Below the pieces are notes generated by a model, which saw only the letters and a program-made list of their open reading frames with translations, had not been told where the DNA came from and searched no databases. A DNA stretch of 63,951 nt, counting the filler, from Guillardia theta CCMP2712 (Eukaryota > Protista > Cryptophyta), in NCBI RefSeq assembly GCF_000315625.1. It is 8 parts of 6 records of this genome, joined end to end, with 100 filler letters (N's around TTAATTAATTAA, not from the genome) between each part and the next. Parts side by side here need not be neighbours in the genome. Positions count along the whole stretch, not along the records: positions 1 to 25,904 come from NW_005434651.1; 7 more parts are not named here. One strand, given 5' to 3'. The first letter of the stretch is position 1. Each line of letters begins with the position of its first letter. Positions 12,707-23,169 of the stretch are shown one piece after another. The position numbers were made by a program, and so were the translations under genes.

Positions 12707-15700
12707 CTAAACTTCCTTGCCCGCCCCCCGTTCCCATTCCTCCTCTTCCTCCGCTACTGCCTCCTTCCACCTCTCCATTTTGGTTGTGAAGGTGTTCATG
12801 AACTCACAGAAAAGGAGCAAACCCGAGCTGGAGAAGGCGTCAGGCAAGTCAACCTTCCCACCCTCCTCCTCACCTGCATGCTCCCCTTCCCTCGATTGCG
12901 CAAAAACTGGAGAAAGATATTTCAGCAGGGAAGGGAGGAGATGGCGGTAAAGCCGGATGAAACGAGGGGAGAGGGAAGAGCAACGGAAGAGGCAAAGAGC
13001 ACTCAAAACAAGGTGAGATTGTGGAAAAGGGGAGAGGACGGGGGACGGGAAGGAAGAGGAGGGCAGGGGGAGTGAAGGAAGAGGAGGGCAGGGGGAGTGA
13101 AGGAAGAGGAGGGCAGGGGGAGTGAAGGAAGAGGAGGGCAGGGGGAGTGAAGGAAGAGGAGGGCAGGGGGAGTGAAGGAAGAGGAGGGCAGGGGGAGTGA
13201 AGGAAGAGGAGGGCAGGGGGAGTGAAGGAAGAGGAGGGCAGGGGGAGTGAAGGAAGAGGAGGGCAGGGGGAGTGAAGGAAGAGGAGGGCAGGGGGAGTGA
13301 AGGAAGAGGAGGGCAGGGAGAGTGAAGGAAGAGGAGGGCAGGGGGAGTGGGGGGGAGGGAAACTTGCTTACCTCGAGGCGACGATCAACCCTCCTTGCGA
13401 AGCTGACGGCTACAGATCTAGAGCAAAGATTATGCCAGCACACTTGTTGCGCCTCCTCCGCTCCCTTAACCCCCTCCTCCTCTTCCTCCGCTCTTCCCTC
13501 TCTCTTCCTCTCTCCCCGATCTCCTGCTCTCTCTCTCTCTCTCCTCCGCTCTTCCCTCTTTCCTCTCATCACTCTCCACTACTCCTCTGCATCACCTGTA
13601 GATTCTTGCTCGCAAAAGAGCGTTGTCTCCCACCAATCGTCGAAGGTGCTCCTCTCCAAAATCGATGCATTCAACCTGCAATATGTGAGAAAGTCGTGAA
13701 CATGATGGGAAAGCACGATGAATTTGAAGGAGTACATCATACCCTCCTCCTCCTCCTCCTCCTCCTCCTCCTCCTCCTCCTCACATCCATCACAACCACA
13801 ATCATCAAGAGAAAGTCGTCGACATCGACATCAAAATTGCTATCATCATCATCGTCGTCGTCATTTCAATCAGCAGGCACCGTAACATACCTGTCCTGAT
13901 GCCAGCACGTTATACGGGGATCCGCGATTTCCAATCTCAAAGAAGTTGACATCTCCAAAAGGCTCCCCAGGGCTAATTTGCAAGGAATGTTTCTAGAGAA
14001 AGAAAGTTATACAACGAACCGAGTCTGGTTGTTCATGTTTCTAATTATTCTTTTCGTTTGTTTTGCTGTGGTTGTAGATGATGATCTGAAGGAAGAACAA
14101 GTGGAAAGAGGTCTGCACGTATGACTACGGTGAGCATGGAGATGAAGTGAAGCAAGACATGCAGGCAGACAGCGAAGTTCAGATGATCGAGTTACCTTGC
14201 CCTCAAGGCTCTGCGAGCACAAGGAGCCAGACAGTAGGAAGTAAAGTTTTCTCTCCTGACAGCCGATGGGAATGATCTGAAACCTTGTCATTCAACAGTG
14301 ATGCTCCATACAACATCTCTCTATCCCTTCCTTTCCCTGCTACATACTCCTCCCTTCCCTTCCCTCCCTCCCTCCCTCCCTCCCTCCCTCCCTCCCTCCC
14401 TCCCTCCCTCCCTCTCTGCTTCACTATCACATGCGGTCCCTCTCTTCCCAGTCTGCTCTGCCCCTGCTGCTTCTCCGCCTTGTCTCACCACTTCATCATT
14501 CTGATACTTTCGGTAGCTCGAGCTTGTCAGAAAATTGGTCCAGTTGCGCATCACCTGCAGATAAAAATTCAGCACTTACCCATCCTCCTCCTCCTCCTCC
14601 TCCTCCTCCTCCTCCTCCTCCTCCTCCTCCTTGTGCTGCTGCTGCTGCTGCTGCTGCTGCTGCTGCTGCTGCTGCTGCTGCTGCTGCTGCTGCTGCTGCT
14701 GCTGCTGCTGCTGCTGTACCACTTTCTCCTCCTGATCTATATCTCCTTCCTCATCATCATCCTCATTTGATCCTCGCCCCTCCGGCTTCTTCTCCACCCC
14801 TAACGCGCTCCCAACCAGTGCAAGCACTTACCCCCGCCTCCTCGACCTCCAGCAGCTCGTCTGGGAGGATCCAGCAGCAGAGGGCGGGGATGCTCTCTCT
14901 CAGGAAGGTAGAAACCTCGTTTTCCTCCATCATGAGACGGTTTGACGACCCTGAAGGCCTGCGGGTGGAAGGTGAGCCAAACGCGTTCACATTCCTTGCA
15001 CTCCTCCTCCTCCTCCTCCTCCTCCTCCTCCTCCTCCTCCTCCTCCTCCTCCTCCTCCTCCTCCTCCTCCTCCTTGTTCAAGCGTCGCATCTCCTCCCGT
15101 TCGTTTTCCTCTCGTCACCCTTGCCTTCTCCACCTCCACTAATCCCATTCCTTTTGTACCTCTCCTCCTCTTCTTACCCCCCAACACTCTTGATACCACT
15201 CTTTCCCTTCCTTCCTCCTCCCCTCCCTCCTCCTCTCTCCTCTCCTCACCTCAGCGCACTGAACACTGAGAACCGGCTCTTGGGCTTGTCACCGTCCAAT
15301 GCTGCTGGGGGGCTCCGGTCGATTGACCTTCTTTCTTGCACAACATTCTCGAGAGAAATCACTCTCTTCAGCATCCCTCCTCCTCCCAGCATCCCTCCTC
15401 CTCCTCCTCCTCCTGCTCCTGCTCCTGCTCCTCCTCCTCCCAGCGCTCCTCCTCCTCCTCCTCCCAGCGCTCCTCCTCCTCCTCCTCCCAGCACTCCTCC
15501 CTCCATGTTCAGCGCAAGGCTTCCAGGACGGGAGCCTTCTTCGGAGCAGCGGGCAACTCGCACTTGCCCCAGCCGGATCTCGATGGCGTTTCGGATCTCG
15601 AGGCAAGCAGCCTCGTCGGCGAACCGCAACTGCAGCACGTCCTTCACTCCCTCGCTCCTCGTGGTCAGCAGCCTCTCCACCAGCGTCCTCGGGGTAGAGT

Positions 15701-21700: not shown

Positions 21701-23169
21701 TCTGCTCTGCTCTGCTCTGCTCTGCTCTGCTCTGCTCTGCTCTGCTCTGCTCTGCTCTGCTCTGCTCTGCTCTGCTCTGCTCTGCTCTGCTCTGCTCTGC
21801 TCTGCTCTGCTCTGCTCTGCTATGCTCTGCTCTGCTCTGCTCTGCTCTCCCTTACATTGCATATGAAGGTCTCGTTAGGCCAGAACAGCTGCAGCACTAT
21901 CGCTCCGACCTTGCAAGAAAGTCAGATACACAAGAACTTGAACACATAGCGCCCTCCTCCTCCTCCTCCTCCCTCCTCCTCCTCCCTCCTCCTCCCTCCC
22001 TCCTCCCTTCTCTTCCTCTCTTCTCCTCCTCTCTCCTTAAAAAATCTCTCCTGCTCTCAAGTGCTCCTCGTCCCTCTTCGTATCCTCCCCCTACTTATTC
22101 CCCTCCCCCCCCCCCACTTCCTCCCCTTACAAAGTCAGCGATGGCCAGCGCAAGGATCCAGGAGGTTCGGAGCACAAGCTCGAGTCGCCAGACGGCAGCA
22201 AACTCTTCGTCGTCGTCCACTGCAAACTTGTGAGCAAGACGACAACAGCAGCACACGAGGAGAACGAAAAAGAGGAGAAGCGAGAAGACGGAGATGGAGG
22301 GCAAAGAAACGGAACGGTGAAACGAGGGAGGAAGAAGAAAGGGAATGAAGGAAGGGAGAAGGAGAATGGCAGAAGCAGGAGAGGGAGAGAGAGCAAGCAA
22401 AGTTTCACAGTTCAGTTTCACAACCTTCCATGTCTGTCATCTCATCCGCCGCCTCAACCTTGGGCGCCATGTACTCCTGCGCCCTCTGCAGAATCGCCTT
22501 GACTGACCCGGGGGTCCTCGCGACCTCCTCGATGGGGGAGGAGGTGGCGTCGGCGATAGTCTCCTGGCCGATGAGGCGAGCGAAGGGAAAGACGAGAATC
22601 TTTCCTCGGATGCGATCCCAGTTCTTGTTCACGTACTCGAAGAGCGCTGAGTGCGACTTCATTCGATTAATCCGTTTCCTCGGGACGTCCGTGTCCTTCG
22701 AGGCGACGGGGGGAGCAGGGGCAGGATCTTTCAACCTGCTGACCATGGAGTCTGCGTTGGACGCTGCTCCCTGCTCCTTGCTCCACGCTGCTCCCTGCTC
22801 CTTGATCCACGCTGCTCCCTGCTCCTTGCTCCTCGCTGCTCCTTGCTCCTTGATCCACGCCGTCTGCTCGCTGATAGAGACTGGGAGACTGCAGACTCTC
22901 GAGAACGACCTTCCGTCGTTGCCCTCTGAAGTCTTCCGAGCCTTCGAGAATTTCTCGACGCCACCCTCCTCTCCAGCCTTCTCGGGGAGCATCGAAACTT
23001 GGTCTGCCTCCTCGTGCTCAACGTCTCGCTGGAAGGAGGTGGAGACGCTGGTGACGAACACGAAGCCTGTGGCAGCCTCGAGCCGCAACCCCTCAGGAGG
23101 AGGAGGAGGAGGAGGAGGGTTGACTTGCTCAAGAGGGTCAAGCTCCCTATGCAGAGAGAGCGGCTGCAT
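12707..23169 (-). CDS. Multi-exon VSP/TPTE-like phosphoinositide phosphatase: VSD-like S1-S4, PTEN phosphatase, C2, CNBD, GRAM, CNBD (start uncertain; catalytic loop falls in the N gap)
   Basis: Four TM exons lead into [19 protein letters not shown] motifs: [44 protein letters not shown]2: [34 protein letters not shown]1: FSSGEIV...LFYLEEG...[13 protein letters not shown]: [11 protein letters not shown]...[17 protein letters not shown]2: [22 protein letters not shown]. Confidence 0.75.
13050..13350. repeat. 25-bp purine-rich intronic minisatellite, ~12 copies
   Basis: GGAAGAGGAGGGCAGGGGGAGTGAA repeated in tandem. Confidence 0.95.
16640..16768. repeat. (GACA)n intronic microsatellite
   Basis: Seen directly. 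Confidence 0.97.
17379..17559. repeat. (CAG)n microsatellite, ~60 units, intronic
   Basis: Seen directly; lies between C2-domain exons. Confidence 0.97.
19451..20419. other. Scaffold gap (other plain gaps at 23687-23786, 42259-42358, 57176-57323)
   Basis: N runs without the linker. Confidence 0.97.
21660..21848. repeat. (CTCTG)n intronic microsatellite
   Basis: Seen directly. Confidence 0.97.

Follow-up and report, generated by a model that had tools for sequence, protein, structure and literature searches.

The window studied here is the whole stretch of 63,951 nucleotides, filler included, from the cryptophyte alga Guillardia theta CCMP2712 (positions are counted along the whole stretch), and 22 exons on its minus strand encode, in gene order, four transmembrane (TM) helices, the last third of a phosphatase domain, a PTEN-type C2 domain, a domain for cyclic-nucleotide binding (CNBD), a PH-GRAM domain and a second CNBD. 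An earlier note on this DNA had claimed the same order and had proposed one protein in which a voltage-sensing phosphatase (VSP)-like part is fused to a CNBD-GRAM-CNBD module. As an observation in the window, this architecture is confirmed. Moreover, the evidence supports the view that a single protein would join the VSP-like four-TM domain, the PTEN-type phosphatase and the C2 domain to the CNBD-GRAM-CNBD tail, because one exon (E15) links the last part of the C2 domain to the beginning of the first CNBD (CNBD1), a paralogue in the same genome (L003) holds all of the domains in one frame, and transcript-like contigs share the order.

Gene structure

The exons (Table 1) were set by coordinate, and their borders (AG/GT) and phases were checked exon by exon. 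In this check E1–E6, upstream of an assembly gap at 19451–20419, and E8–E22, downstream of it, showed AG acceptors, GT donors, matching phases and zero stops. Hidden Markov model (HMM) profiles were built from the sequences of relatives only, none from the window, and run against all 942 six-frame fragments of the window with matches listed at E < 1; within this threshold they matched the minus strand exclusively and followed gene order, with the strongest match in the CNBD1-GRAM part (E 2.7e-47). When single relatives were used as tblastn queries, the same collinear order was returned, and helices S1 (E 4.8e-4), S2 (E 0.005) and S3 (E 0.035) as well as E8–E9 (E 1.3e-4) were added. Genome-wide searches covered the assembly of 87,145,349 bases in 669 contigs, in which positions 1–25,904 of the window are G000:C23:797894-823797.

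Exon E15, of 373 nt, runs from the last C2 strands through a linker into the first helix of CNBD1, and is joined to E16 by a phase-1 splice. Because E15 alone spans both parts, an arrangement of PTEN-C2 and CNBDs as two genes is excluded. Two in-frame introns are very short (42 nt between E8 and E9, and 50 nt between E10 and E11), and without them the spacing equals that of relatives exactly. Microsatellites fill the long introns, such as (CTG)n at 17262–17582 and (ATG)n at 18330–18715. Thus the domain order given in the earlier note agrees with exon phase and with the minus-strand-only profile matches, its one-protein proposal agrees with E15, with the 1188-codon frame of L003 and with the transcript-like contigs, and its description of a gene split by a gap and by introns rich in microsatellites was accurate.

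Related genes

L003, on contig C12 of the same genome, is near-intronless, and a single open frame of 1188 codons covers S1 through the second CNBD (CNBD2), with Pfam matches to PTEN_C2, DSPc and cNMP_binding. When the CNBD1-GRAM exon was the query of an exhaustive HMMER search, ten distant relatives came up, all at 21–30% identity bar one 62-residue fragment at 48%; in several of them PTEN_C2 precedes this part, cNMP_binding follows it, or both. Among named organisms, the closest relatives of the window proteins are from the cryptophytes Hemiselmis, Hanusia and Chroomonas, and one protein of Hanusia phi shares 82% identity with the sensor of one paralogue. Four TM helices, NKRRF, HCQGGKGRTG, the CNBD1-GRAM module and a Pfam CNBD are all present in the Hemiselmis tepida protein P0011 (UniRef A0A7S0VJF1, 1580 aa), whose C2 region is PTEN-type but has no Pfam C2 match. 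P0036 (1980 aa) is the sole open reading frame (ORF) of a 6136-nt JGI contig that resembles a full-length transcript, and overall the same order of domains is found in proteins of 1580, 1980 and 1045 aa from transcript-like contigs. P0041 combines Ion_trans, phosphatase, PTEN_C2 and cNMP_binding. The environmental locus L001 (ENA ERZ17293822 NODE_736648, 3473–7802) encodes a classical C2 domain, four helices, HCRG/GKGRTG with the P-loop split by a short intron (at the slash), PTEN-C2 and the tail, and its sensor is divergent and His-rich (…VKTHAHLHMTRAIF…). A contig near-identical to L001 is present in a second sample.

Over the whole genome, the CNBD1-GRAM profile matched seven loci, on C23 (the window), C12, C29, C106, C183, C14 and C150, and an eighth on C4 (L012) contains the CNBD1-GRAM module and a phosphatase. 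A same-strand PTEN-type phosphatase match adjoins the module at seven of the eight loci; the exception is the window, where the phosphatase scored too low genome-wide, though its exons were found by tblastn and profiles. A canonical voltage sensor is present on C14 (L010), C150 (L009) and C4 (L012) with profile E values from 1e-15 to 1e-33, and in these three loci the Arg-rich sensor is followed on the same strand by phosphatase, C2 and CNBD1-GRAM, which makes them, as judged from their domains, the best candidates for a true voltage-plus-cyclic-nucleotide enzyme. The divergent sensor type described below occurs in the window, on C12 and on C29. Canonical VSPs with no detected tail are on C21 (two copies), C190 and C48. 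In CNBD1-GRAM no copy in the genome has diverged further than that of the window, at 19–25% identity to relatives. The architecture is conserved in cryptophyte algae, with at least eight copies in this genome; the window gene is thus not unique, but belongs, with its imperfect assembly, to a family of ∼8 in the genome.

Two of the loci with canonical sensors deserve a separate description. The C21 copies (L006 and L008, G000:C21:456965-465137) are neighbouring, oppositely oriented canonical VSP genes, and in each a classical C2 domain (PF00168) precedes a Pfam Ion_trans sensor and an HCKGGKGRTG phosphatase. On C48 (L011, G000:C48:142956-146384), the frame 1–1962 of 654 codons encodes S3–S4 (RILRCLRLVKIFRRLRK), a PTEN-type phosphatase (HCRNGKGR) and a C2 domain, after which another linker (NKRRF) and another phosphatase (HCKAGKGRTG) follow in the same frame; the locus is thus a double phosphatase in tandem or else a read-through of two genes.

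Catalytic and C2 domains

The readable part of the catalytic domain in the window gene is the last third of a VSP/PTEN-type phosphatase, followed by a PTEN-type C2 domain. E8–E15 gave collinear matches for the C-terminal helices of the catalytic domain and for the PTEN-type C2 domain, for which relatives pass Pfam PTEN_C2, and E15 shows the last C2 strands with an FSPxF motif. The first two thirds of the phosphatase domain, counted from its N-terminus, are absent from the window sequence and, by collinearity, lie in the gap. The phosphatase of L003 matched the solved structures of TPTE2 (E 3e-38), Ci-VSP (E 4e-36) and PTEN (E 2e-33). In all relatives an NKRRF/Y linker joins S4 to the phosphatase, and their catalytic loop reads HC(Q/R)GGKGRTG, with the VSP-type Gly. 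The P-loop of PTEN has Ala rather than Gly, and at this site (G365 in Ci-VSP, A126 in PTEN) Gly goes with activity on PI(4,5)P2.

C-terminal tail

An AlphaFold model of the window exon (15696–16604, minus strand) with 12 relatives had a mean predicted local distance difference test score (pLDDT) of 66, with both domain cores mostly >70. Residues 1–149 of the model form a CNBD fold: all of the top 50 Foldseek matches were CNBDs (E ∼1e-4), and CRP superposed with Z 12.0 and a root-mean-square deviation of 2.8 Å over 122 residues. Residues 162–303 form a PH-GRAM fold, matched by Lam6 (Z 11.2; 93 residues, 2.5 Å) and by residues 74–169 of MTMR2 (Z 10.5). A profile search of PDB sequences with CNBD1-GRAM returned the same families at E 0.1–1 only, and Pfam GRAM had no match by sequence on the window exons; the GRAM identity proposed before is nevertheless borne out by the fold.

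For CNBD1 the earlier proposal is borne out by the fold, but the usual ligand-contact residues are lacking. Most relatives likewise lack the Glu in CNBD1, with Met, Thr, Val or Asn in its place, suggesting a CNB-homology domain in which binding of a ligand is unlikely. CNBD2 is split over E17–E22. Canonical CNBDs have an acidic residue and an Arg nine residues apart, as in the window cassette FGD-x8-R; L003 has LGE-x8-K, and the cassette fits the family pattern G-[DE]-x-[LF]-G-E-x8-[KR]-G, being two residues longer past the Arg/Lys than canonical. The CNBD2 of relatives passes Pfam PF00027 cNMP_binding at 32–45 bits, and that of L003 reaches 22.6 bits, under the cut-off of 27.5. E19 and E20 match the family profile whose members pass PF00027 (E 0.0056 and 2e-6), and with the canonical acidic/Arg spacing these matches uphold the second CNBD. 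The window itself shows CNBD, GRAM and CNBD, in this order, as the C-terminal part of a signalling enzyme.

Four-helix domain

The profile of the divergent TM family was aligned by hhalign to a five-member alignment of canonical VSP sensors with a probability of 96.7% and E 4.3e-10, in an alignment of 139 columns that begins at S1 and ends at the linker; against just two near-identical canonical sensors, only S4 and the linker were aligned. Reading the hhalign output by eye, we found that divergent and canonical sensors have in common the S1 Asp, a GRR motif after S2 and an S3 Asn, and that the S3 Asp is replaced in the divergent subfamily (by Tyr in the window). Every third residue of the window S4 is K, R, R, R and H in turn, followed by ARRFKR, and this S4 is the most canonical of its subfamily, whereas the divergent S4 of relatives has just 1–3 Arg/Lys plus several His. 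By this profile comparison, the four-helix domain appears to be a divergent S1–S4 voltage-sensor homologue, in keeping with the VSP-like protein of the earlier note. It is not a canonical sensor: there is no Ion_trans match and the S3 Asp has become Tyr. Because the S3 Asp is lost and the S4 Arg are largely replaced in relatives, classical steep voltage gating appears doubtful in the divergent subfamily.

Other searches with this domain were negative. Pfam Ion_trans did not match the divergent TM domain, the canonical-sensor profile had no match on the window, and no solved voltage sensor was matched by sequence, the TM profile giving one chance-level match to a gustatory receptor among PDB sequences. 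For the divergent TM region, a word-indexed search for homologues found no match, and the ESM-Atlas look-alikes were unnamed clusters only, below 0.85. The model of the L003 TM region is a four-helix up-down bundle (pLDDT 69), and its fold matches were the S1–S4 domains of TRP, PKD2, TPC, KAT1 and SLC9C1 mixed with soluble four-helix bundles at Z 8–11.5, which is below the trust level of the alignment tool for helical bundles.

In L003, P0011, P0036, P0037, L001 and L005 the divergent S4 conserves the pattern R/K…H…H/Q..R……C, and a His is conserved in S2. A histidine cluster inside a sensor-derived bundle is unusual.

Assembly gap and gene boundaries

Runs of N in and near the gene are at 19451–20419 and 23687–23786. 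The flanks of the first of these are matched by L003 as far as the S4 helix (∼residue 270) and again starting with residue 408, so that the absent stretch is ∼140 residues (∼420 nt), and the 969-nt gap has room for it plus a few introns of 42–50 nt like those nearby. The first two bases of E8 complete the codon aligned with the final Gly of the relatives' GRTG; this start directly past the loop, together with collinearity, is consistent with the earlier placement of the P-loop in the gap.

The ends of the gene are unsettled: it extends from ∼23169 to ∼12800 and has at least 22 exons, the last supported exon ending at 13372. Two boundaries in the earlier note are not established. The stop at 12707 does not share the phase of E22 and lacks homologue support, and the start ATG at 23169 has no support from homologues or Pfam. 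Read by eye, a phase-0 junction from E22 to 12906 would hit a stop at 12798–12796. Within the gene, the E12/E13 acceptor is ambiguous, several in-frame acceptors being possible for E13. The 100-N gap at 23687–23786, ∼500 nt upstream of the tentative start, limits the search for further 5′ exons, for instance ones for the N-terminal C2 domain that some relatives carry.

Elsewhere in the window, positions 2149–9381, and probably sequence beyond both sides, form a tandem array with a period of 3466–3467 bp in three copies that are 99–100% identical. Each array unit contains a 147-aa ORF on the minus strand and a 175-aa ORF on the plus strand, and the array may have arisen by tandem duplication in recent times or may be an artefact of assembly.

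Table 1. Exons of the phosphatase gene and the gap that interrupts it, in gene order. L and P numbers denote relatives; profile ranges are matches of HMM profiles in window positions; a slash in a motif marks an exon junction.
Feature	Position	Strand	Content	Evidence
E1	22459..23169	-	tentative first exon, 237 codons from ATG	GT donor phase 0; no Pfam match or homologue support
E2	22131..22226	-	helix S1, conserved S1 Asp	tblastn L003 E 4.8e-4; family S1 alignment; phase 0
E3	21856..21909	-	end of S1 and S1-S2 loop	TM profile 21909-21832, E 0.022, hmm positions 20-44
E4	21420..21581	-	helix S2 and S2-S3 loop	tblastn P0037 E 0.005, also L003; phase 0 at both ends
E5	21137..21229	-	helix S3 (FNLYY…), canonical S3 Asp is Tyr; S3 register from hhalign	TM profile 21217-21128, E 0.012, hmm 103-132; tblastn L003 E 0.035
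E6	20846..20912	-	first half of S4 (K..R..R..R..H)	phase-consistent; mafft onto family S4; no significant single-exon score
E7	20479..20524	-	second half of S4; in-frame TAA 20489-20487	in phase with E6; resembles family VLVVARCC
Assembly gap	19451..20419	.	expected: NKRRF/Y linker and ∼125 phosphatase residues including HCxxGxxR	
E8	19371..19418	-	phosphatase helix just past P-loop	tblastn P0036 1.3e-4, L003 0.007, P0011 0.048
E9	19274..19328	-	phosphatase, after 42-nt in-frame intron	length equals relatives' once intron removed
E10	18841..18916	-	end of phosphatase domain	profile 18936-18835, E 2.3e-7; 68% identity to P0009 over 25 aa
E11	18716..18790	-	start of PTEN-type C2	weak profile match 18796-18725, E 0.77, collinear; phase 0; length equals that in L001
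E12	18247..18323	-	C2 strand	profile 18332-18237, E 0.003; tblastn P0011 E 0.002
E13	17900..17960	-	C2	by-eye match to paralogue L003 only, no tool match; listed acceptor keeps phase, others possible
E14	17583..17693	-	C2	profile 17693-17634, E 0.036; tblastn E 0.002-0.012
E15	16885..17257	-	last C2 strands (ELCFVSFH…), linker, first helix of CNBD1	profile 17260-17126, E 3.8e-11; continuous frame of 124 codons
E16	15250..16612	-	degenerate CNBD1, long helix, PH-GRAM, Gly-rich low-complexity stretch	CNBD1-GRAM profile 16607-15837, E 2.7e-47; AlphaFold model
E17	14832..14958	-	start of CNBD2	in phase; N-terminal helix CNBD-like by eye; no significant single-exon score
E18	14489..14554	-	CNBD2 strands	in phase; E18/E19 junction …NDEV/IIPIGC… vs …SGEVIMEAGC… in L003
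E19	14196..14276	-	CNBD2 strands	family CNBD2 profile 14279-14190, E 0.0056
E20	13891..13992	-	phosphate-binding cassette of CNBD2	profile 13983-13888, E 2e-6; 50% identity to P0004 over 30 aa, within the Pfam cNMP_binding match of P0004
E21	13596..13675	-	C-terminal helices of CNBD2	in phase; position as in relatives
E22	13372..13417	-	last supported exon	in phase; resembles P0011 C-terminus RVYRNIAIKLAIKL

Discussion

We read the window as one gene of a cryptophyte family of membrane-bound phosphoinositide phosphatases, and for this reading, with the cyclic-nucleotide (cNMP)-switched mechanism proposed for it, we estimate a probability of roughly 0.7. The four helices would hold the catalytic domain at the membrane, as in VSPs, and the PTEN/VSP core would act on phosphoinositides. 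CNBD2 may bind cAMP or cGMP, upon which the catalytic unit might be released or re-oriented, by analogy with Epac, PKG and GbpC/D, and the GRAM domain might add a second lipid or membrane contact. CNBD1, with its ligand contacts lost, would serve as a structural or relay domain. In the divergent subfamily, cNMP would likely be the main input, while the paralogues with canonical sensors may combine voltage and cNMP inputs; we infer that voltage, cNMP and lipid signals could be integrated in this way.

Several results weigh against this reading. Pfam found zero domain matches on single window exons and on long stop-free frames, the exons being too short for it and the domains having diverged too far. 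The single-exon scores for S1–S3 are weak (E 0.005–0.035) and S4 has none, and the Foldseek and VIA-align matches of the L003 TM model were non-specific. CNBD1 lacks both the Glu and the Arg contact (FGM, not FGE, and no Arg at +9). The P-loop, the linker and ∼125 catalytic residues of the window gene fall in the gap, and because the catalytic loop lies there, the activity of the window phosphatase cannot be judged. Moreover, E7 contains its in-frame TAA 8 nt before the sole GT donor and ∼60 nt from the gap edge, and in the literature we found no measured ligand binding, lipid substrate or voltage dependence for members of the family.

The E7 stop raises the question of whether the window locus is a decaying or non-functional copy, a pseudogene, with the architecture genuine in its paralogues. 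The position of the TAA ahead of the only GT donor would fit such decay, as would the microsatellite-swollen introns, the divergence of this copy in CNBD1-GRAM and the failure to place the last ORF of the earlier note in phase as a terminal exon. However, 15 consecutive exons (E8–E22) keep GT-AG borders, phase and open frames with family-typical residues conserved, and the sole defect lies so close to the assembly gap that it falls where base calls are least reliable; read by eye, a one-base error in the upstream A4 run, or a GC donor, would remove the TAA. We thus consider a pseudogene unlikely, and the window copy to be incompletely assembled and possibly defective. A mis-join at the gap, by which the four-TM exons and the phosphatase-C2-CNBD exons would come from two different genes or paralogues, is very unlikely. 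Continuity over 19451–20419 is unproven by the sequence at hand, and the genome has >10 related loci that could be confused during assembly; but the flanks share strand and correct order and omit just the part from the end of S4 to the P-loop, which fits the size of the gap. Moreover, the TM exons upstream are of the divergent type, not the canonical one, and this type occurs solely with the CNBD-GRAM-CNBD tail, and no second copy of either flank was found elsewhere in the assembly, where matches were to intronic simple repeats only.

Other explanations concern the mechanism. The four helices could be a mere membrane anchor and the CNBD folds non-binding, as in KCNH, with the tail serving autoinhibition or docking to proteins or lipids. 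The replaced S3 Asp, the few S4 Arg of relatives, the absence of a sequence match to any solved voltage sensor, the substituted Glu position of CNBD1, the longer CNBD2 cassette and the sub-threshold Pfam score of L003 CNBD2 all point in this direction; on the other side, the CNBD2 of several relatives passes Pfam cNMP_binding with canonical Gly-Glu/Asp and Arg/Lys spacing, and the same tail is found on canonical Arg-rich sensors in paralogues and P0041, an argument for a working sensor as the origin of the membrane domain. On this balance a plain anchor with silent CNBDs is somewhat improbable, yet to be taken seriously. A bolder proposal, which we put forward tentatively and think rather unlikely to hold in full, is that cryptophyte phosphoinositide phosphatases are coincidence detectors, in which a membrane sensor and a cNMP switch (CNBD2, with GRAM as lipid reader) would jointly set phosphoinositide levels. 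The sensor would be a canonical S1–S4 domain, or a remodelled one in the subfamily of the window, where the His and Tyr that replace S4 and S3 charges in relatives, the S4 of the window having kept three Arg, could mean a response to pH or metal ions instead of voltage; as speculation, the enzymes might act downstream of algal rhodopsin-driven electrical signals. If true, this would be the first enzyme known to join VSD-type and CNBD-type control.

Returning to the reading as a cNMP-switched membrane phosphatase, if it is true, the family would link cAMP/cGMP and phosphoinositide signalling in one membrane polypeptide, and would offer a possible route from electrical or cNMP signals to phosphoinositide turnover in flagellate algae, a link to light being speculation. 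For tool builders it suggests a cNMP-switchable phosphoinositide phosphatase, and the occurrence of canonical and charge-depleted sensors in one family provides a natural series on sensors losing charges. Because of the gap and the E7 stop the window copy is a poor choice for study; better suited are the near-intronless C12 paralogue and, among copies with a canonical sensor, those on C14, C150 and C4.

Relation to described proteins

In a full-text search of the literature, no description of a CNBD or GRAM tail on a VSP or PTEN came to light, in line with the earlier note, and as far as found a VSP/PTEN-type phosphatase with a CNBD-GRAM-CNBD tail is undescribed. Relatives carry automatic database names such as 'Phosphatidylinositol-3,4,5-trisphosphate 3-phosphatase'. 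To our knowledge, VSPs are the only well-studied enzymes driven directly by a voltage sensor, and all described VSPs end after C2. The cryptophyte family resembles Ci-VSP and TPTE/TPTE2 in its apparently S1–S4-homologous domain and, in relatives, the NKRRF/Y linker, the HCxGGKGRTG loop and the PTEN-type C2 domain. It differs in adding ∼550–900 residues of CNBD-GRAM-CNBD, and the window subfamily differs further in a sensor without the S3 Asp, and in relatives without most S4 Arg, that both Pfam Ion_trans and the sequences of solved sensors miss. Outside animals, canonical VSPs are mentioned for choanoflagellates (PMC12223298), which was the sole such mention found in the literature.

With PTEN the family shares the catalytic fold and C2 domain (L003 E 2e-33) and, in E15 of the window, the FSPxF motif, whereas PTEN is soluble and has no TM, CNBD or GRAM parts. 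The PH-GRAM domain superposes on those of myotubularins and Lam6/GRAMD1, and myotubularins also pair GRAM with a Cys-X5-Arg phosphoinositide phosphatase; their GRAM domain is, however, N-terminal to a phosphatase of a different subfamily, and they lack TM and CNBD parts. Dictyostelium GbpC and GbpD have a GRAM domain between two cyclic-nucleotide-binding domains (PMC11988041), which bears out the CNBD-GRAM-CNBD tail that had been ascribed to them, and this tail is likewise C-terminal to a regulated catalytic unit, the likeness drawn here being one of domain order. There the module regulates a RasGEF (plus a Roc-kinase unit in GbpC) and not a lipid phosphatase. Finally, SLC9C1 and the HCN/CNG/KCNH channels combine an S1–S4 sensor with a cytoplasmic CNBD and bring voltage and cNMP onto one effector (PMC6052114), and a 2024 review of voltage sensors names SLC9C1 as the non-channel protein that pairs a sensor with a CNBD (PMC13095418); in these proteins, which have no GRAM domain, the effector is a transporter or a pore, whereas in the cryptophyte family it would be a phosphoinositide enzyme.

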